Source: Adineta vaga (lineage: Eukaryota > Animalia > Rotifera). Taken from it: 64,000 nt of DNA. The translations under genes were made by a program, and so were the position numbers. Below the pieces are notes generated by a model that saw only the letters and a list, made by a program, of their open reading frames with translations, did no database searches and was not told the origin of the DNA. Every line of letters starts with the position of its first letter. Within the stretch, counting starts at the first letter, position 1. The DNA lies in the NCBI GenBank assembly GCA_021613535.1, contig CP075492.1:13516001-13580000 (forward strand). Reading direction: 5' to 3'. Below, one piece after another: positions 33,865 to 52,662 of the stretch.

Positions 33865-34671
33865 TCGTGCTTATCTAGCTCTCAATAAAACGTTTGAAAA
33901 AAAAAGCTCGTACAACAAAAAAGAAGAAAAATCCAAAAGAAAACAGAACGAAAAAATCCAACATTATACGCATTCATATATGTTAAAAATACACGTCAAT
34001 AAAGTATGAAAAACAAAAAGAAAGGTATACATATTACTCACGGTTACCTTCGCTTTCAACGATTTCAACATTGACGAAAAGAAAAAGATGTCGATATAAA
34101 TCTCAATATTAAAAAAAATATAGATTATAGAAAGATTCATCCAATAATTAGAGAACATAATTTTACGACAAAATGTTATTTAAGAAATAAAATGATTGAG
34201 TGATAAAACCATCTCGATGGTAAGAATGGCAAGGTTGATACATCTTCTTCACCCACAGCGCCATTGTTCTTTATAAGAGTCATACAAATATTTAACTCTT
34301 ACATCAAACTATCATATTCGTGGATATAATATAATTACAATAATCAATTGTTCTATTGATTTTTGGGGGACATTTTATATATTATTGTTATTCAATGAGA
34401 AATGGTCGTCTTTGTGTATTTATGAAACTAATTATAATAGATTTCAGTTGAGCTGAAACATCATCTCAATACATGTTCATTCATCAACAACTTTCAAACT
34501 GATGACGATACAATTATCGTGTCTGTTCGCTATGCATTCGATTACCAGGTCGACAACATATTTTAAGTAGCTGAAAAAACATTTATTTTTTGAAAATTAA
34601 AACGTGGAAAGAAAACAAATATGAGTCAAGCGCTTTTTGTGCGATATCAAATATTCAGAACTAGAAGCAAA

Positions 34672-35571
34672 TCATATAAATGGTATCGATTGATACACTG
34701 GGTTGGCAGCTGGTGCTCTAGTAACATGTCCAATACTGATTCTCCAAAAGTCTAACAATTGGGTAACAATCATGCAACAAGCCAAAACATCGATAATCGT
34801 TTGTGATAGATTCCATGTATTAGCTTCTTCATCTAATCGTGCAAACATCGGAAAACTTACAATAAAATAAATACCATAAAACATTGAACCATATGCATAC
34901 ATTGCATATCGATCAGGAATATCATAGTAAGGAAAATGTTGAATAGTAAATGTTTCTAAGAAAGCCACAATATAGCTGACTATAATCACGATAATTCCAA
35001 CATAAAAATACCGTATTTTGCCTTTTGTTGGCATACGACGCCATACTAATCTCATCATAATCGATGATAGAACATGATAGAGATGAAAGTAAGAATGTGT
35101 GATCAAATATAACGCAAATGGTACATCATTGAGACGATGTGCTTTGAATGTGTACGTAGCATGTAGAACAACATAGAAATAGTGTGTCCAGAAATAATTA
35201 GCTATCCATGAGAAAATTCCTATATAAAGATTTGCCTTTGTTGTATAACGGCGAGAAATAGGAAGATGTGAAGAGAGAAAAACTTTTGGAAAAAGGACAG
35301 GAAATATAGTTGGAAAGATGAATAATAATAATCCAAGAGTAAGATAATGATAAGGTGTAAATGTTTCAAACCATTGTGAATAGACTATATAGAATAAGAT
35401 GCTAATCCAAATAAGTGACCATAATAAAAAGAATTGTTCAGCACGAGCTTTCTCGGGATTAGAAGAAAATATTGTTGAATTTGGTACAGTATAGGAATCG
35501 ATTGGTTTTCGTTGTATATTATTGTTTGATAAAGATCTTCTCTTGGAAAGACTAATTGTACGTTGTACCAT
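34672..35571 (-). CDS. CPI1: Cycloeucalenol cycloisomerase (cyclopropyl-sterol isomerase)-like, intronless
   Basis: SSNPEKARAEQFFL, KANLYIGIFSWIANYFWTHYFY, RLNDVP, FLETFTI.HFPYY and GSMFYGIYFIVSFPMF match plant CPI1 conserved blocks as recalled. Confidence 0.85.
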   Translation of the reverse strand: MVQRTISLSKRRSLSNNNIQRKPIDSYTVPNSTIFSSNPEKARAEQFFLLWSLIWISILFYIVYSQWFETFTPYHYLTLGLLLFIFPTIFPVLFPKVFLSSHLPISRRYTTKANLYIGIFSWIANYFWTHYFYVVLHATYTFKAHRLNDVPFALYLITHSYFHLYHVLSSIMMRLVWRRMPTKGKIRYFYVGIIVIIVSYIVAFLETFTIQHFPYYDIPDRYAMYAYGSMFYGIYFIVSFPMFARLDEEANTWNLSQTIIDVLACCMIVTQLLDFWRISIGHVTRAPAANPVYQSIPFI

Positions 35572-35778
35572 GTTTCTTTTTTGTTACCGAAATAAACTGC
35601 ACACACACTTCAATATCATTGCTTTTTTTCTATCTTCAAACAATAAGCGAGCGTTCTATGTTGATGTTGGTCATACCATCAGCTTCTTATCTAACAACAC
35701 AGTTTAAATTATAAATATACTATCATATCTTCTACTTTCTTTCTTTTTCATATTAAACTACATAAAGCAAGAATACTT

Positions 35779-36836
35779 ATGAGTAGTATTCCAGTGATTG
35801 ACATATCTCCCTTATTATGTTCATCGAATGAACAATCAAAACTCGATGTATCTCAAGCAATTCGTCATGCTTGTGAAACAGTAGGATTTTTTCAATTGAT
35901 TGGTCATGGTATCGAGAAACAAATGTTTGATGATATGATTAAAGAAGCTTGCCGGTTTTTTTCACAATCATCCGAAGAAAAACAACATTATGCTGTACAT
36001 AAATGGAATCCATCCAATTCTAATACCTATCGAGGGTATTTTCCGTCATCAGTAAATGGAAAAGAAGGTCTAGATCTATCTTCACCATATCTTGATCCCG
36101 AACATGAACTAGTGAAAAAAGGTGATCCTCTACATGAATTAAATCGTTGGTCAATGAATGAAATATTAATTCAATATTGGGATCACATGTGTGAGTAAAA
36201 ATTAATCTTTTTAAAACAATAATATTATTTCATAGAAGAAAAATGCAAAACTGTGTTTTTTTTCTAGGGCGTATTGCAATTGAACTTTTACGTGCTATAG
36301 CACGTGGATTTAATTTGGATGTATCCTATTTTGACAAGTACCTTGATGACCGTTCAACTGGTGGTGCTGGAACTGTTTCGACTTTTCGACTTAATTTTTA
36401 TCCTCACTTAGATAATCCTACACCTGCAGCAAGAGGTGCTGATGATGATGAACCACTGTCATGTGAAGAACATTTTGATGGATGTTTACTGACACTTCTT
36501 TATCAACATGAAGTCGGTGGTTTACAAATTCAATTAGCAAATGGAACCTGGTTGGATGTACCTGTAGTTCCTTGTGCTTTAGTAGTAAATACCGGTAAAT
36601 GTTTAGAACAATGGACAAATGGATGTTTGAAAGCTGTAAAACATCGAGTGAAATTATTAAAAGAAGAACGTCTTTCCATTCCATTCTTCTTGGAACCTTC
36701 ATTTTCCTCATTGATTGTGCCACTATCAACTGCATGCGATACACCGAAATATGAACCAATCAGTTATGGACAATTTATTGCAGAAAGTAATAAAAAATTC
36801 AAAGAGTATCAACGTGGTGAAAACAAATTTTCATAA
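35779..36836 (+). CDS. Isopenicillin N synthase-like Fe(II) oxygenase (DIOX_N + 2OG-FeII_Oxy)
   Basis: IPVIDISPL, ACETVGFFQLIGHG, Fe triad HFD...H (KHRV) and RLS motif. Intron 36191-36267. Confidence 0.85.
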
Positions 36837-37319
36837 AAGTATGATTTCTACATATTTATTCTGCATTGAAAATAGTTATTTCTAATAAAATATATAAGCG
36901 CAAACGTTTACAATATGACGATTCTATGTCAAGGAAAAAAAAAGTAATCTATAACATATTATCTATAAACAAAACTAACTTTTTGTAAAAAATTTTGAAG
37001 ATAATTATAACGCACTTCAAAACGTTTTCTTTTTTTTGTCTGATTATTATTCTTACGACATGTTGACTATGAGACATTAGTTTCGTAGTAACAATTCAGA
37101 ATGATTCGCAAGTTATAGTAAAGAAAGATAATAATTGAAAAGATATCGGAGAAATAAAACTACTGAAGTGTTTGAGTTTGTTATATTTTCATGAGATGTA
37201 ACTCTTTAACAGGTTTCTCTTCAGATGCATTCATCTCGAGAGTTTACTTAACTTTTAAACAATTATGGTTGACAACAATGATCCAAATCATGTATGATTG
37301 ACCGATATTTAACTTTATC

Positions 37320-38031: not shown

Positions 38032-39659
38032 ATGGCACAAAGTAGTCATGAACGTATTCAAGACATACCGTGTCGAACGAATGTTGTTTCTCCAATAATA
38101 GAACAACAAAATCAACGTCGCAAATCATTTACAACACGTCAAAATATTCGTGATGTCTGTGGATTGATTTTTATTCCTGGTATGATTGGTATACTTACAA
38201 TAGCAATAGCTATTGTTCAACTTCATATTGCAAGTCGGCAACGTCAACAAGATTTAACCATTGCCGAAGCTAATCGATTGAACAGTTTGATGATTGCAAA
38301 TTATACAAGAGAACAAGATCTTTTAATTGCTAATACTCTTCGATGGGATACTATTTTTGCTGGTTATGTTGATGATATATCATCTATCATAGATGGATCA
38401 AATTTCTCTTTTGATACTAGTGATTATTTTATGAGTTCAATAATTCGTGCTAAAACAATGACTGCCGGTCGACAATTAGATACAATACGAAAAACATACT
38501 TAATTCAATTTCTTTACGAACTTAAAGCAATACTTTCTCATCATAATCCAATCGATCTTACAGGTCTGGAATTGAACAATATTGACTTAAGTATGTCAAT
38601 ACTTACTAGCAAACAAGGTTCTTCTCTCGCAGGTTTATCATTAACTGGAGTTTCTCTTATTAAATCTTCATTTATTGCCCGAGAACTTACGGATGCAAAT
38701 TTTACTGGAAGTAATTTACAAGGAGCTAATTTTCGATATGCTTCGCTTCATAATGTTTCATTTCGTATGTCGATTTTTCCGGTAGTGATCTACTTGGATC
38801 ATCTATTACTGATGAACAATTACAGAAGGCATACTCAATATTTGGTGCCATTTTACCAAATAAGACCTTCGGTATTCATTCAAATTTGTTAAAAAATGGA
38901 AATGCAGAGGAAGCATCAGTATGTATTGACGGACAGGTCCAATCTATTGATCATGGTGATTGGAATATTACTCCATCTGATAGTATTGGTGTAACTATAA
39001 TCAATAAAACAGTAGCTGAACTTGCAGCACAACGTTGGTTACAATTGTAGGAAGTATGTTTTTTTTAGATCAACTGATAAAAATGAGGCTTTTTATTGAA
39101 TATTTTAGCAACTTAAAATTGATGTAGAACACTTCGATATTATCGGTAATCATTTTTGGAACGTCAAACAATGTTCATTTGTAATGAACAGTCATTATAA
39201 ACACGCATCCATCTCTCAATTAATTGATATTCCGAAGCAGTATCATGAAACAACAACAACAACTAGTACATCATATTCATGGTTTATATCATTATTTTGT
39301 GGTATATTTCAAAATCAAGCAAATATAAGTATCACATTGAATGAGTTGAACAGTCAAAATCAAACATTAAGCATTCACAATTTTGGTGGGTATTCATAGA
39401 GTTGCATCAATTATTCAATTTTATTTTTATTTTAGTGTTACCTTATCAAGGTAATTGGTTAGGATATCGTTCATACAATGAAAACAGTACATATGCATTA
39501 TTTAAACTTGAGTTTTATAACTTAAATTTTATTAATACAAATAGTTCAACATTAAATAATCAAACTTATGATGATGCGATTGCATTCTGTGATAATATTC
39601 ATTTATCGTTAGAACTATCGTCGGTTGTTCTGTCGGTTATGTCCATTCGAATGCTATAA
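38032..39659 (+). pseudogene. TM + pentapeptide-repeat protein gene with a frameshift (~38766) and an in-frame TAG (39048-39050)
   Basis: TM helix, IIRAKTMTAGRQLD..LIQFLYE and repeats ANFTGSNLQGANFRYASL. The sequence continues in another frame as VDFSGSDLLGSSITDEQL..ILPN..NLLKNGNAE. Later exons correspond to ORFs 39184 and 39402. Confidence 0.7.
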
Positions 39660-41352: not shown

Positions 41353-44300
41353 ATGACAGATGCAGGAACAAACTTCGAACAACAACAAAGTTTACTCAGT
41401 GCTCTCGGACAACAAGAGTGCTCTATATCATCGTGAATATCATTGATAATTGAAATTATGATCGTAATATTTATTTTTTGAAATTGTCTTAGGAGATGGT
41501 ACCAACACATATATTCAATACTACAAACACGAAATCTTTGGATTATTCTATTATTAGTCATTACAATTACTGGTATTGGAATGGCTTTCATCCCTCGATA
41601 TAATCAAAATCGAGAAGTTGAACGTATCGATCAAGATCAACGTAAGTTTTGTACTATAGTATAGTATATTATAATTGATTCACGTAAACAATAGGCGGAT
41701 CATCGAAATGGAATTCGAATGGAAATTATGCACCAAAAATTTATTCTTCACAAAAACAGTCGAATTCTAACTATTACAATAAACAAGATCGTCGACATTC
41801 TCCTATGTCCTCTTTCATGAGACAAGTAATGATTTGATCTACTTATTGGCATGATTATGTCTTGTCTTCTTTTGTTTTAAGAAACAAAAATCAAACCGAC
41901 CTGAAAGTGTTGGTCATATGAATATTTATATAAAAAAATTCATCGAAGATGATGATGATGATGGAGCATCACTAGAGCGTCTTCGTTTTCCTGTTGCTCG
42001 ATATGATCGACGTCAATTTCGTATATTTCATTTTAAGTTAGCACTTGTTTGTCATATAGATACAGTGAAACCTCTCTAACTGGGCACCTCTCTAACAAGG
42101 GCACCTCGCTTAAATGGGCGCTCGGTGGACCGCCCGATTAGTTTTCCATGAGAATGAACCTCTCTTACAAGGGCACCTCGGAACTCTGGGCAGTGGGCAC
42201 TGGTTTTGGTCCTCATAATACGTCTTAACCTCTCTTATATGGGCACATGTGATTCGTGTTCCAATCAAAGCATAATTCTTTTATCACTTGCCGTCCTTTG
42301 TTGTTCCTTCAATGGGAATAAAATTTCCGTCCAAATCGAACATGAAAAGTTATCGTCTATTCATACGAAAGTCTGAATTAAATTAAGAATACAGTATAAA
42401 GAGTGGTGTAGTGAGTTGTTCCTGGCTGACATAACATTCAAATGGCCTCTCATAATCATCTATCTCTTGAAAAGAAGATCATGTTGATCAACGACTATGC
42501 TGATGGAGCTGGAGTCTCACAGCGCACGTTATGTGTTAGGTACCAAATATCGAAGGGTGCTGTTTACAACATTCTACAACGAAAAGACGAATATAAATCC
42601 GATTTTCAAATGAATGCAAACAAAGGTGTTAAACGAAAACTTCAAGACGAATCAGGACAAAAGATCGACGAAGAAGTATTCTCATGGTTTGTGAGACAAC
42701 GATCAAAGAATATTCCAATATCTGGACCATTGATACAAGAAAAGGCACGAGAAGTTTCAGAATCGATTGGGATTTTGCCAGGGTAAGTGTGACATTTTGA
42801 AACTGTTTCGCTGTTATTCTCATTATTTATTTTAGAACCTTCAAAGCGTCGAATGGATGGCTAGAGAAATTTAAAAATCGTCATGCGATAGTGTTTCGTG
42901 CACTATCTGGAGAAAGTGCAAGCGTCGATCCGGTTACCGTAGAGGAGTGGAAGAAAAGATTGCCCATTTTGCTCGATTCGTATTCAATGGACAATGTCTA
43001 CAATGCTGACGAAACTGGCTTATTTTTCAAGTTGTTACCTGAAAGATCTATGGTCTTGTCAAAAGATTCATGCAAGGGTGGGAAGCGTTCGAAAGAACGC
43101 TACACAGTACTTTTATGTTCTAATTGGTCAGGTACACATAAGTTGAAGCCATTAGTTATTGGTGAGTATGAATCTTTGATTATTATGAGTCATCATTTTT
43201 ATTCCTTTCACAGGAAAGAGTCGTCAACCACGATGTTTCAAAAATGTTAACATTAATAAATTATCTATCATTTGGAAATGGAATCGCACTGCATGGATGA
43301 ATGCTTCTATCTTCACAGATTGGATCAATTCAATCAATACTCAAATGCAAAAAGAGAAACGGTATGTATAGCTTTCATAAAAACTATTTTAATCGTTGTC
43401 GTTTTTTATCAAATCAATAGTAAAATGTAAAATCCTTATTTACTCTTCATTTTAGAAAGATCTTGCTTTTTCTCGACAATGCTCCTGTGCATCCAGTTGA
43501 TTTAAAACTATCCAATATTACAATGATATTCTTTCCTCCAAACACTACTAGTAAAGTACAGCCACTTGATCAAGGAATTATTCGTGCATTTAAAGTATAT
43601 TACCGAAGTCGATTAGTGAAACATATTATCAGTAGCTGTACATTAGCATCTTCGCTTGATGAAGTAGTGATTACCGCACTGGATGCTATTCACTGGATCG
43701 AGGCGGCTTGGAAAAATGTAACCGAGTCGACTATTCGTAATACATTTCACACGGCTGGTTTCAAACATCGTAATCTGTCTGATACAGTTGAAGATGTCGA
43801 AGAAGAAATTAGTGAAGTTAGCGACAATGAACTATTTAAGAAACTGGACACTCTTCTTTCGCATCTCGGAGTTGATGGTCCTCAATTATCGGCAACTCAA
43901 TATGTGATGATTGATGATGAAATTCCTGTCTTTAATGAGTGGGAGGACAGTCCAGAAGTTTTCTCAATTACGGAAGACAATGAACAAGATCAAGAAGAAA
44001 ATGAAGATGAAGCTATTCTAGAAGAACCGCCATCAATTGTGGATGCGCTTGAAATGATTCGAAAACTACATTTACTTGTGTCTGTTCGTCAACCGGAGCT
44101 TCATGAACTAGTAAGCGAGTTAGAGTCGAAATTGACTGACACTTATATTGATTCAAAAAGCAGTAAACAAAGTTCTATTACAGATTTTTTTTCACGAGTT
44201 TGATTGTAAATACAGAAATTAATTTATTTGTTTAAATAAAGAAAAAATGACTTTGTATCGAAATTAGAATAAAGGGTAGTTTATGTAACCTAACAACATA

Positions 44301-46958
44301 TCAACCATATTAGTTTTCTACTGATCTTTGTGTATATGTGTATACCAAACAAATTTTCAACGCGTAGGAAGGTGAACCTCTCTAAACAGGGCACCTCGGT
44401 TAAGTGGGCAGTTTGGGACTGTCCCATTAGTGCCCATTTAAGGGAGGTTCTACTGTAGTTGTTTTCTTCTAGATTTCAAAGGTCCTTTTACAACTTTCAT
44501 GCCATCGATTCCGATTGTTGCTGATCCATTCACTCGTCAAACTCTTATCTATGCATCAGTTGGAGGTACGACTATTTGCTCAATCAAATCATTCATTATC
44601 GAGATTATTTTAGTGTATATTTTACCACCATTAGTCAATTCTTACGGCAAACTCTATTCTGTCGCTGAACTTATTGCATTCGGTTATGCTAGTTTAGTTA
44701 GTACAGGTGTTCCACCAAACAGTTTTATTGATATGAGATCCTACTATCGTCCTATACCAAGTTAGTTCTCTTTGTCAACGTTCATGTCATATTGAAAATC
44801 ATTCAATTCTAGTCATTGGGAAAAATATACCAACAATAAACACTTCCACGAATAGATTTACTGGAAGTTTTCATACAAATTTTGGTTATTTCCAGACACC
44901 GGATGAAATAGAAGACTCCAATGATCGTGACTATAGCGATAATTATCAAAATGATCGAACTGATTATCGACCATCGTCATATTTTTACAATAGAAATCAT
45001 CATCGACGGCGACCATCCAATCGAAGTAAGTAAACAACGAGTATTCACCATTGAACATGATATATTATATGTAACATGATCAAATCTTGAGATAATTATT
45101 TTCTAAGAAGGTCCATCACAAACAAAAACATCGTCAACGCAACGATCTACTACTACATCTACATCGACGATAGGTAGTTATCACACGAGCACTCGTTTTT
45201 TAAAAATCGTAAAAAAATGATATAAAATATCAAATATATTTAGCAACAACTCGAGCATACAATGATGGCGAAGTTCATCTAACGTTAATTATCGATACAT
45301 TTCGTCCGTATTCAACCTCGGATAAACCAATTGTTTCAGCTAATTATTCATATCCTGGTCCATTGATTGAAGCTTACGAAAATGATACATTGATTATTCG
45401 AGTCATCAATCGACTTAATGTTCCTTCAACAATGCATTGGCACGGAATTCGTCAAATCAATACTCCGGATATGGATGGTGCTGTAGGTGTTACACAATGT
45501 GCTATACCACCTAATCATGAATTAATTTACAAGTTCAAAGCTAATCCAGTAGGAACGTTTTGGTATCATGGACATCTACTTGAACAATACACGGATGGAT
45601 TATATGGACCATTGATTATTCGTCAACGCGATCAACCAAATACTCTATCATATGATAGTGAACACATATTGATGATTGCAGATTGGTATAATAATCGTGC
45701 TCACACTGAATTACTTCCTTGGTATATCAACTCAAATAATCCTGATGGTGTTGAACCAGTTCCAGATGCTATTGTGGTTAATGGAAAGTTTACTCAATCA
45801 TTATTCATATCCTTATCAGGTTCAACTAAAATTCTATTTCGAATTATCAATAGTGCATCATTTTCAATGTATACAGTTTCAGTCGATGGTCTACCATTAC
45901 ATATTGTTGAAGTAGATTCAACAACTACTTCACCTTATACAGTTAGTACATTTAATATTAATGTTGCTCAACGTGTTTCATTTTATATCGATACGAATGA
46001 ACTACATCCAATGTACACTTTATCGAATGCATCATTAACTAATTCATTATTTATGCGAATTCAAGCTATGCTTTCAATGTATCCTGTCGATATTCTCAAC
46101 TATATTCCTCCATATGAACGGCAACGTTATCCATATCCAACATTTTTTAATCCGTTATATCTTCTAATTTTATCACTTGATTCGAATAATTCGACACCAA
46201 CATATTCAGCTAGCGATGCAACACCTACAGTAACAAATAATACGACAACATTAGACACAAATCTTTTAGATGCTCGACCATTACATAGAAATCAGAATGG
46301 AATTCCAGTTGCAACTCACTATTTAAATCTTGTCATTGTATTTGATTTAGGTACTGATGGCGTCAATCATCCATATTTAAATAATGTTACATATACTTCC
46401 GATGCTAATTATATGCATATGAGACCTAATCCAAAGAAGGGAATAACTTCAGATCTATATCAACCATTATTACATCAGATGGCTGAAAAACCGAACGAGT
46501 TACTTATTCCATTACCACGTATTGAAGATAATAATCAACTACCAACAATTCAAAGTGATAAAAATGGCCATTATTTAGTACCATATAAGGCAGTTGTTGA
46601 TATATTTTTGAATAATACCGATGGTGGTGAACATCCGTTCCATTTGCATGGCCATAATTTTTGGATTATCGCAACATCCGATTATCCTGATGCAGGAAAC
46701 TTATATCTCAACGATTATCTTCAACGAGATACTGTTAGTATACCTGCATCAGGTTGGGCAAAAATTCGCTTTGTAGCTGATAATCCCGGTGCTTGGTTCT
46801 TTCATTGTCATATAGAATGGCATATGTCAGCAGGATTAGCTTTAGTTTTTCTTGTTTCGCCCGAACAATTACTCACTAATGGTTATACGATTACACCGGA
46901 ACAAAAACAGCTATGTCAAGCATTAAAACAATTTAATACAAATAATAAAATGAACTAA
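41353..46958 (+). CDS. Multicopper oxidase (laccase-like) with a long multi-exon N-terminal extension containing a signal-anchor helix
   Basis: Copper motifs HWHG, WYHGH, HPFHLHGH and HCHIEWHMSAGL lie in one large exon (45244-46958). Eight upstream exons from ATG 41353 splice in phase, across the transposon-bearing intron. Confidence 0.8.
42063..44455 (+). mobile_element. Full-length pogo/Tigger DNA transposon inserted in a laccase intron
   Basis: TA target duplication at 42061-62 and 44456-57. Imperfect TIRs CAGTGAAACCTCTCTAACTGGGCAC / CAGTAGAACCTCCCTTAAATGGGCAC. Subterminal AACCTCTC..GGGCAC repeats. Confidence 0.95.
42442..44203 (+). CDS. pogo/Tigger transposase (CENP-B-type HTH + DDE_1, DD30D), 4 exons
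   Basis: FKASNGWLEKFKNRH, NADETG, LFLDNA and QPLDQG. Three GT-AG introns (~42783-42835, ~43162-43213, ~43362-43455) restore an uninterrupted frame. Confidence 0.92.
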
Positions 46959-51082: not shown

Positions 51083-52662
51083 ATGTTTTCATCAACCTTT
51101 GCAGCTGTAATTTTCTTTCTGATATTATTCTATTATTACGTTAAACGAGTTTATTTTACATTATATGGACCAATTCCTGGTTTATCACCACAATTTCTTC
51201 TTGGAAATTTATTTCAAACAGGTGTGATCGGAAAAAATCGTTCGTTTAATGAAATATTTCTTGATTTAAAATCTAGATTTGGTGATGTATTTCAATATTG
51301 GCTTGGTCCAACACGTATCATTGTTATTAGTCAGTTTGAAGATGTTCAACATATTTATTCTCATCGACACATCTATGATCAAGGAGATATATTTACAGAA
51401 AAAATCAGTCTTGTTAATCCATATGCAATTCTTTGTCTCAAAGGTATTTCAATATTTCATTGAGTTCTTATTGAAAATCAACAAAAAGATGTCTTATTTT
51501 TATAGGATCTGCATTTAAACGGCATAGTAGTATTGTAACGCCATTATTTCGTCGTTATAAAGTAAATGCATATCTCGATACAATAAATGATTGTACAGAT
51601 AAATTATTAAGTCGTTGGAAAAATTCGAATGATGAGTCGAATAAAATTCATTTAAATATGATTGAACAATGTCAACAATTATTACTTTCTATATTTGGTT
51701 TTGTTGCATTTGAATATGATTTACAAACACTTGATGATCAATATAATTATCAAAGAAATGAATTGACAGAAGCATTTCATATTCACCTTGGTGCAGCAGT
51801 ATATGCAATTCAATTACCAATGATTCTCGCCAAACTTTATCTATTAAATCCGACATATCGACGAGCAAAAACAATCATCGATCGATATTTAAATGAAATG
51901 ATTGAACAAGAACTACGTGAAACATCAGACATGCGAACAGCACGAAAGAAAACAAGTTTAATTGCTTCATTAGTGGCTTCCTTACAACAAGATGAAAGCA
52001 TTGAAGAAAAGAAATCAGAAGAAGATAAGAAAGGTCTTTCACGAGCGGAAGTTATTGGAGAAATGCTTTCATTTCTTTCAGCTGGTTATAGTACAACATC
52101 AACATCTCTTGTTTGGTTTATATTTTTTATTAGTAAATATCCAACGATTCAAAAGAAATTAAAAGATGAACTTCTCCAATATGAACAACAATATCTTTCA
52201 ATTGAACAGCTTGATTCATTAGTATATTTAGATTGTGTTTTAAAAGAATTATTTCGTTTTATACCACCTGTTCCTGGAACTGTTCGAACATTAGTTACGA
52301 ATGATCAATTACCTTCCACAGGTTTTCATTTATATAAAGGTGAACAAATTTTTATTTCATTTTATGGTTTAAATCGTGATGCACGTTATTGTCCAGGATC
52401 AATCGATCCAAATCAATTTTATCCTGAACGATTTTTAAATAAAATGGATGAGAAAAATAAGATCGATTCAACTACATTTGGTGGAGGTCATCGACAATGT
52501 ATTGGACAAGATTTTGCAAGACTCGAATTAAAGGCTATCTGTAGTCGGCTGATGCAGCATGTTACGTTTGGTGATGGAGGAGAACAAATTAATGCTGGAG
52601 GATACAAACAAACAGATACAATTTTACCGAAAAATATTGCTGTCACCATAACATTTGATTAG
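51083..52662 (+). CDS. Cytochrome P450
   Basis: N-terminal anchor, GPIPG, I-helix AGYSTT, ELFR (ExxR), PERF and heme motif FGGGHRQCIG. Intron 51444-51505. Confidence 0.92.

Follow-up and report, generated by a model that had tools for sequence, protein, structure and literature searches.

Adineta vaga, a bdelloid rotifer, carries in its genome a gene of the CPI1 (cycloeucalenol cycloisomerase) family which, in our reading, serves an endogenous sterol pathway running through cycloartenol; we put the probability of this reading at roughly 0.6. The gene lies in a window of 64,000 nucleotides on chromosome C3 (13,516,001-13,580,000; positions given below without a contig label are those of the window), in an assembly of 6 contigs and 100.8 Mb in which C3 is 20 Mb long. 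CPI1 acts on cycloartenol-derived sterol intermediates, whose 9β,19-cyclopropane ring it opens, and in plants it converts cycloeucalenol to obtusifoliol (EC 5.5.1.9). By the textbook account animals cyclise oxidosqualene to lanosterol, and CPI1 is without a role on the lanosterol route. A. vaga probably makes its own cyclopropyl sterol substrate: an endogenous route is preferred to the salvage of dietary sterols because an oxidosqualene cyclase, sterol methyltransferases (SMTs), a CYP51 of the obtusifoliol type and an ERG2-type isomerase are present in the same genome. A second gene, which encodes a 2-oxoglutarate (2OG)/Fe(II) oxygenase, stands head to head with CPI1.

The CPI1 gene is intact and expressed

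The CPI1 coding sequence occupies 34672..35571 on the minus strand, with its ATG at 35571, and encodes 299 amino acids without an intron, as defined by the open reading frame, by homology and by an RNA contig. A word-indexed protein search gave 233 relatives at E<=0.001, many of which, JGI entries included, are named cycloeucalenol cycloisomerase. The protein shares 80% identity with an Adineta ricciae protein and about 40% with a Brassicaceae 'Cycloeucalenol cycloisomerase' (87% query coverage, E 3e-54). The open reading frame had no match in Pfam, NCBIfam or PDB, i.e. the gene is assigned to the CPI1 family by sequence homology alone. Among 88 non-bdelloid homologues 37 columns show at least 95% conservation, and the A. 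vaga protein has the conserved residue in every one of them; a Kyte-Doolittle scan, the only membrane analysis, places at least four hydrophobic segments at positions like those of the plant protein.

Expression was followed in assembled contigs from the RNA-like runs of two studies, in which contig ends are not transcription starts and depth is not quantitative. A contig of run X1 (34529-35619) runs colinear with the genome, without a joint, through the entire CPI1 reading frame and both untranslated regions (UTRs). The 3' UTR (34568..34671, minus strand) is seen in a contig of run X2 that stops at 34568 with a loose T10, i.e. a minus-strand poly(A) junction 14 nt past an AATAAA signal (34587-34582). 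The CPI1 mRNA is polyadenylated. An earlier note, made from the letters of this DNA, had named the gene CPI1 and described it as intronless and intact; the match to CPI1 is significant, with all 37 conserved columns kept, and the colinear RNA contig bears out the description of the gene.

CPI1 is present in a single copy in the haploid assembly, and orthologues occur in several bdelloid assemblies. Compared with two of these orthologues the dN/dS ratio is 0.08-0.13, a value that is approximate because dS is saturated. In A. vaga the gene is intact and transcribed, and it is conserved and under purifying selection across bdelloids.

Intronless genes with non-animal relatives are the classic signature of contamination, and one may ask whether the locus is a contaminant, an assembly artefact or a functionless, decaying relic. 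We regard this as very improbable. The contig is a chromosome of 20 Mb, its GC content in the window is flat at about 30% with no shift at either CPI1 or the oxygenase, and a metazoan TRPM channel gene (with a SLOG domain) lies 2 kb away, so the contaminant that the earlier note had named as a risk is not what we see. Against a relic stand also the polyadenylated CPI1 mRNA with its AATAAA, the spliced intron of the adjoining oxygenase, the orthologues in several bdelloid assemblies, a dN/dS of about 0.1 and the retention of every conserved residue.

Partner genes of a probable cycloartenol-type pathway

The genome contains one oxidosqualene cyclase locus, an intronless gene of 722 aa on chromosome C1 (I4U23_003470; L002:1480-3657). 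In the alignment the residues Y382/H448/I452 of this cyclase stand opposite T381/C449/V453 of human lanosterol synthase, and they are the equivalents of Y410/H477/I481 in Arabidopsis cycloartenol synthase (CAS). In the Arabidopsis enzyme H477N brings about full conversion to lanosterol synthesis and I481V a partial one (bioRxiv 10.64898/2026.05.26.727834). The Y/H/I combination was found in 113/114 of the best full-length relatives of the A. vaga cyclase and Y/H/V in 1/114; these relatives include all the named Adineta and Rotaria proteins as well as an Acanthamoeba protein named cycloartenol synthase. We predict from these residues that the A. vaga cyclase is of the CAS type. By family membership, CPI1 co-occurs with a CAS-type cyclase in this genome. 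A quick tree places the bdelloid cyclases as sister (SH-aLRT 100) to the cyclase of a eukaryote contig with a GC content of 44%, on which an SMT gene stands head-to-head with it (L086:5993-9875); this is the closest non-bdelloid cyclase relative, at 64% identity.

Sterol_MT_C, the SMT domain, occurs at four loci. CYP51 is an intronless gene of 494 aa with the helix-I motif AGQHTS (G000:C6:8798179-8799480; L071:1459-2943, minus strand), and its score is 457 bits with the obtusifoliol 14α-demethylase 6q2c but only 330 bits with human CYP51. Since obtusifoliol is the product of plant CPI1, a CAS-type cyclase upstream and an obtusifoliol-type demethylase downstream would frame the CPI1 step. The ERG4/24 family has 15 matches, SQS_PSY two loci, FA_hydroxylase 19 matches and FAD_binding_3 17. 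An intronless homologue of the ERG2/sigma-1-type sterol isomerase was found on chromosome C1 (292 bits; G000:C1:2502943-2503608, L045), and the EBP-type isomerase of animals and plants has no match in the genome. As regards regulation, no promoter motif common to 12 sterol-pathway genes, CPI1 among them, survives multiple testing against 25 P450 controls; the top word was of low complexity, TTCTTTTTC-like, and not significant after correction.

The genes can be arranged into a putative route. Squalene synthase and then an epoxidase that is as yet unproven would supply the substrate of the cyclase; a cyclase of the CAS type would be followed by an SMT and by C4-demethylation. CPI1, as a predicted membrane enzyme, would act next and open the cyclopropane ring, and the obtusifoliol-type CYP51, a C14-reductase and the ERG2-type isomerase may complete the series. 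The activity of CPI1, the product of the cyclase, the order of the steps and the source of 2,3-oxidosqualene are all points that we infer here.

Ancestry of CPI1

A careful maximum likelihood (ML) tree groups the nine bdelloid-like CPI1 sequences into one clade (support 100/98), nested in a clade of 23 sequences (100/99) whose remaining members are metagenome sequences. The contigs fetched for the sister sequences have GC contents of 49-64% and carry eukaryotic genes (dynein heavy chain, cofilin, protein kinase). The nearest named sequences are those of the chytrid Thoreauomyces and of Paulinella, both on long branches. A separate clade (100/99) unites the CPI1 proteins of plants, green algae, a glaucophyte, stramenopiles, Protostelium and Acrasis. 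Among the best 120 of the 233 CPI1 matches, Adineta is the only named animal. The earlier note had called the gene plant-type and had proposed a phylogeny; the term holds for the enzyme family and not for the ancestry, as the bdelloid genes are not nested within plants and belong to a strongly supported clade shared with the metagenome eukaryotes, outside that of plants, algae, stramenopiles and amoebozoans. Its description of CPI1 and the oxygenase as foreign-type genes stands: CPI1 is without a named animal relative outside the bdelloids, and the nearest non-bdelloid relatives of the oxygenase look bacterial. The best explanation of this distribution is that CPI1 was horizontally acquired and is now fully domesticated in A. 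vaga.

In three of the metagenome contigs (L081:6060-8924, L082:4174-8050 and L083:1275-4125; GC 49-64%) CPI1 stands head-to-head with a P450 that bears the CYP51 helix-I signature. The proteins of these contigs are the closest non-bdelloid relatives of both A. vaga enzymes, with identities of 60-66% for CPI1 and 55-58% for CYP51. Reciprocal retention of ohnologues, by which a CYP51-CPI1 pair would have been split between chromosomes 3 and 6, was considered and rejected: a tblastx comparison of 24 kb around CYP51 with the whole window gave no match.

The adjacent oxygenase

The oxygenase gene lies on the plus strand and consists of two exons. Exon 1 (35779..36190) encodes a DIOX_N domain (residues 1-138; PF14226, E 3e-23) and exon 2 (36268..36836, stop codon 36834-36836) a 2OG-FeII_Oxy domain (PF03171, E 6e-22). 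Between them is a phase 1 intron of 77 nt (36191..36267), with the donor GTGAGT at 36191 and the acceptor AG at 36266-36267, and the 412 nt of exon 1 together with the 566 nt of exon 2 before the stop give 326 codons. The earlier note had treated 35779-36836 as a single oxygenase gene, which is confirmed, the open reading frames 35779-36198 and 36243-36836 being joined by the intron. Exactly 36191-36267 is skipped in contigs of X1, X2 and X4, which come from two studies, and a contig of the DNA-like run X9 reads through it. It follows that X1, X2 and X4 are RNA runs and that the oxygenase is transcribed and spliced.

The protein analyses used a 326-aa database record (P0121, A. vaga I4U23_015162) that was returned by the exon 2 search and is 100% identical across exon 2. 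It has the iron triad H206-x-D208...H263 and the 2OG-binding R272-x-S274 in addition to both domains. The best solved matches are 6jyv (137 bits), the ethylene/succinate-forming enzyme 9ovh (136) and isopenicillin N synthase (IPNS; 1bk0, 124). The label 'IPNS-like' given earlier is thus apt for the domain architecture and the HxD...H and RxS motifs, while the closest characterised relative is not IPNS. The nearest database relatives are bacterial proteins generically named 'IPNS family oxygenases'. Orthologues with 74-76% identity are found in A. steineri and Rotaria sordida, and split tblastn matches imply an intron at the same place in both. The nearest non-bdelloid relatives are 43-45% identical, and the 45% one is encoded on a compact contig, with HxlR, DsbA, SDR, sulfotransferase and P450 genes, that looks bacterial. 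For the oxygenase, the best explanation of these data is an acquisition separate from that of CPI1, of a bacterial-type gene that would later have gained an intron.

A few further observations concern this family and this transcript. Besides this gene, the oxygenase family has over 20 matches in A. vaga. Two shortened copies (residues ~153-323, 76% identity) lie at C3:390647-391160 and C3:1787558-1788072, i.e. 0.39 and 1.79 Mb into chromosome 3, and distant family members are clustered at C1:0.28-0.49 Mb. In the 3' UTR of the oxygenase a contig of run X4 omits 34 nt (AT..TT, 36843-36878), which is probably an allelic indel and not an intron. Trans-splicing was considered for the common contig start at 35793 and rejected: the conserved N-terminus would be lost by it, and the contigs showed no loose letters of a spliced leader.

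Is the head-to-head pair a unit?

The two ATGs, at 35571 (minus) and 35779 (plus), are separated by 207 bp (35572..35778), as the earlier note had reported; the 5' UTRs of the two genes, and presumably their promoters as well, lie in this divergent intergenic region. On the CPI1 side the RNA contig extends to 35619 and on the oxygenase side the RNA contigs begin at 35793, these being contig ends and not mapped transcription starts, so that 35620-35792 (<=173 bp) is free of RNA contigs.

One could envisage a functional module in which a single bidirectional promoter serves CPI1 and the oxygenase and both enzymes work on the same sterol substrate, for instance first by ring opening and then by hydroxylation or demethylation. 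The short distance between the ATGs, the at most ~173 bp left uncovered between the transcripts and the presence of both transcripts in the same RNA runs fit such a module; nevertheless we find it rather unlikely. A comparison of synteny in related species, as suggested earlier, shows that the adjacency is absent elsewhere: in A. steineri no CPI1 was found within 6 kb upstream of the oxygenase, in Rotaria sordida none within 1.8 kb upstream, and on two bdelloid-like contigs (L007, L011) no oxygenase within 6 kb upstream of CPI1. In the closest non-bdelloid relatives the divergent partner of CPI1 is CYP51 and not a 2OG oxygenase. The nearest relative of the oxygenase is on a bacterial-looking contig where no sterol gene is among the genes called, the more than 20 other matches to the oxygenase family in A. 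vaga likewise speak against a module, and short intergenic distances would be expected in a compact genome. Given that four other bdelloid loci lack this adjacency and that the donor types differ, shared regulation is unsupported. Of the bidirectional promoter claimed by the earlier note, the 207-bp divergent spacing stands and a conserved arrangement does not; shared promoter elements are a possibility. Most likely the head-to-head placement is incidental and arose in the A. vaga lineage, in a gene-dense region rich in foreign-looking genes.

Endogenous synthesis or dietary salvage

Several points weigh against the readings preferred here and should be considered together. A search of the 100.8-Mb assembly for the canonical squalene epoxidase domain, PF08491, gave no match even at E 10. 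Pathway genes were sought by six-frame family searches of the assembly, by which intron-rich genes can be missed. The product of the cyclase is predicted from three residues, and the cyclase tree has no animal lanosterol synthase placed in it. As most bdelloid loci are short, the search for a CPI1-oxygenase pairing covered no more than 1.8-6 kb. The sister contigs of CPI1 may come from an unsampled lineage closer to rotifers, in which case the story of the transfer would change and the function would not. Finally, the literature searched links no bdelloid sterol chemistry to cycloartenol or CPI1.

For the epoxidation step the genome offers a candidate, and no more than a candidate. A flavin monooxygenase gene (L002:3-1244, C1) lies on the same strand as the cyclase, directly 3' of it. 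In its product a hydrophobic stretch at the N-terminus precedes a GxGxxG dinucleotide-binding motif, and among solved proteins the polyether epoxidases MonCI and Lsd18/LasC match it best. The alternative epoxidase AltSQE was also considered. After clustering of the 19 FA_hydroxylase matches, two groups were compared with the ESM Atlas: one resembles fungal clusters of FA-hydroxylases and methylsterol monooxygenases, the other falls into a 'desaturase' cluster of rotifers plus bacteria, and neither can be called AltSQE. The AltSQE literature searched does not mention rotifers.

The gap bears directly on the explanation proposed by the earlier note, i.e. that CPI1 acts on dietary sterols. A rotifer without sterol synthesis would open cyclopropyl sterols from algae, plants or detritus by means of CPI1 and finish them with CYP51 and reductases. 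Bdelloids feed on algae, yeast and detritus, and without a detected canonical squalene epoxidase the de novo formation of oxidosqualene is unproven. On the other hand, cyclopropyl sterols are only minor intermediates in food organisms. A CAS-type cyclase kept across Adineta and Rotaria would be pointless without oxidosqualene, a candidate epoxidase stands beside this cyclase, and genes of the SQS type are present. The animal also grows on a sterol-free defined medium with bacteria: in salts, three sugars and three B vitamins, and with only its associated bacteria, A. vaga increased from 5 to about 357 individuals/mL (PMC12650600). This growth supports an endogenous sterol route in a circumstantial way. 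We consider salvage unlikely, if a more serious contender than a module with the oxygenase, and unneeded in an animal that appears to have its own CAS-type cyclase, SMTs and a CYP51 resembling obtusifoliol demethylases.

Beyond the endogenous route itself, a wider scheme can be put forward tentatively, at somewhat less than even odds. Bdelloids would run a complete cycloartenol-type pathway made of foreign genes. A single eukaryotic lineage, with its sterol genes in divergent pairs (CYP51-CPI1 and SMT-cyclase), would be the source of the cyclase, CPI1 and CYP51, and a MonCI-like enzyme would serve as a third kind of squalene epoxidase. On this scheme no other animal would be known so far to form its sterols by way of cycloartenol.

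Other genes of the window

Further foreign-looking intronless genes are found in the same region, namely those for a pentapeptide-repeat protein, a multicopper oxidase and a P450. The first is a 286-aa open reading frame (38032-38892, plus strand) with pentapeptide repeats and an N-terminal hydrophobic segment. A laccase-like, uninterrupted open reading frame of 531 aa (45363-46958, plus strand) has three multicopper-oxidase domains and, being equally intronless, looks like another foreign gene. The cytochrome P450 frame (51658-52662, plus strand) has 334 aa and covers Pfam positions 148-434; the P450 set of A. vaga is very large and mostly intronless, with 107 six-frame matches genome-wide. 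A DDE_1 transposase fragment (43463-44203, plus strand) contains only the C-terminal half of the domain.

Relation to known systems and significance

Judged by its sequence, the A. vaga gene adds a new member, from an animal, to the CPI1 family. It resembles the CPI1 of Arabidopsis in belonging to the same family over its full length, in its ~40% identity to Brassicaceae CPI1, in the 37/37 conserved positions and in its hydrophobic pattern, and it likewise co-occurs with a CAS-type cyclase, an SMT and an obtusifoliol-type CYP51. It differs in that the host is an animal, that the gene falls outside the plant/green-algal clade and that it is known here from sequence. Acanthamoeba, Naegleria and Dictyostelium provide a second parallel, as non-photosynthetic eukaryotes that use cycloartenol synthase, CPI1 and CYP51. 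The A. vaga cyclase has Y/H/I as in the Acanthamoeba protein named cycloartenol synthase, and the CYP51 of A. vaga is closest to the solved obtusifoliol 14α-demethylase 6q2c. However, the bdelloid genes are not sister to those of Protostelium and Acrasis (CPI1) or Acanthamoeba (cyclase), and a canonical squalene epoxidase was not found in A. vaga. The oxygenase shares DIOX_N and 2OG-FeII_Oxy, the HxD...H triad and the RxS motif with solved members of the IPNS family (6jyv, 9ovh, 1bk0), but it is nearer to uncharacterised and ethylene-forming enzymes than to IPNS and bears a eukaryotic intron.

'Plant-like' sterol genes have been seen in animals before. Sterol C24-methyltransferases occur in annelids, sponges and rotifers, and rotifer SMTs are already published (bioRxiv 10.1101/2022.04.22.489198; PMC10692144), in keeping with the four SMT loci of A. 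vaga; according to part of that work, annelid phytosterol synthesis overlaps with the cholesterol pathway. Unlike the present analysis, these two studies do not mention CPI or cycloisomerase or a rotifer cycloartenol synthase, and 'cycloartenol' appears in them only as an assay substrate. In the literature searched, 'cycloeucalenol' was not found together with 'bdelloid', no work naming both 'cycloartenol' and 'rotifer' ties cycloartenol synthesis to rotifers, and the best-ranked results for bdelloid and sterol terms do not mention 'bdelloid'.

If the endogenous cycloartenol route is correct, bdelloids would be animals with a plant- or protist-style sterol pathway, probably obtained by gene transfer. 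The gap at squalene epoxidase could then lead to a new enzyme for the epoxidation step. Such a pathway would bear on the debate on whether animals can be a source of 'plant' sterols and of fossil steranes, and it would show that whole pathways, beyond single genes, can be rebuilt by horizontal transfer.

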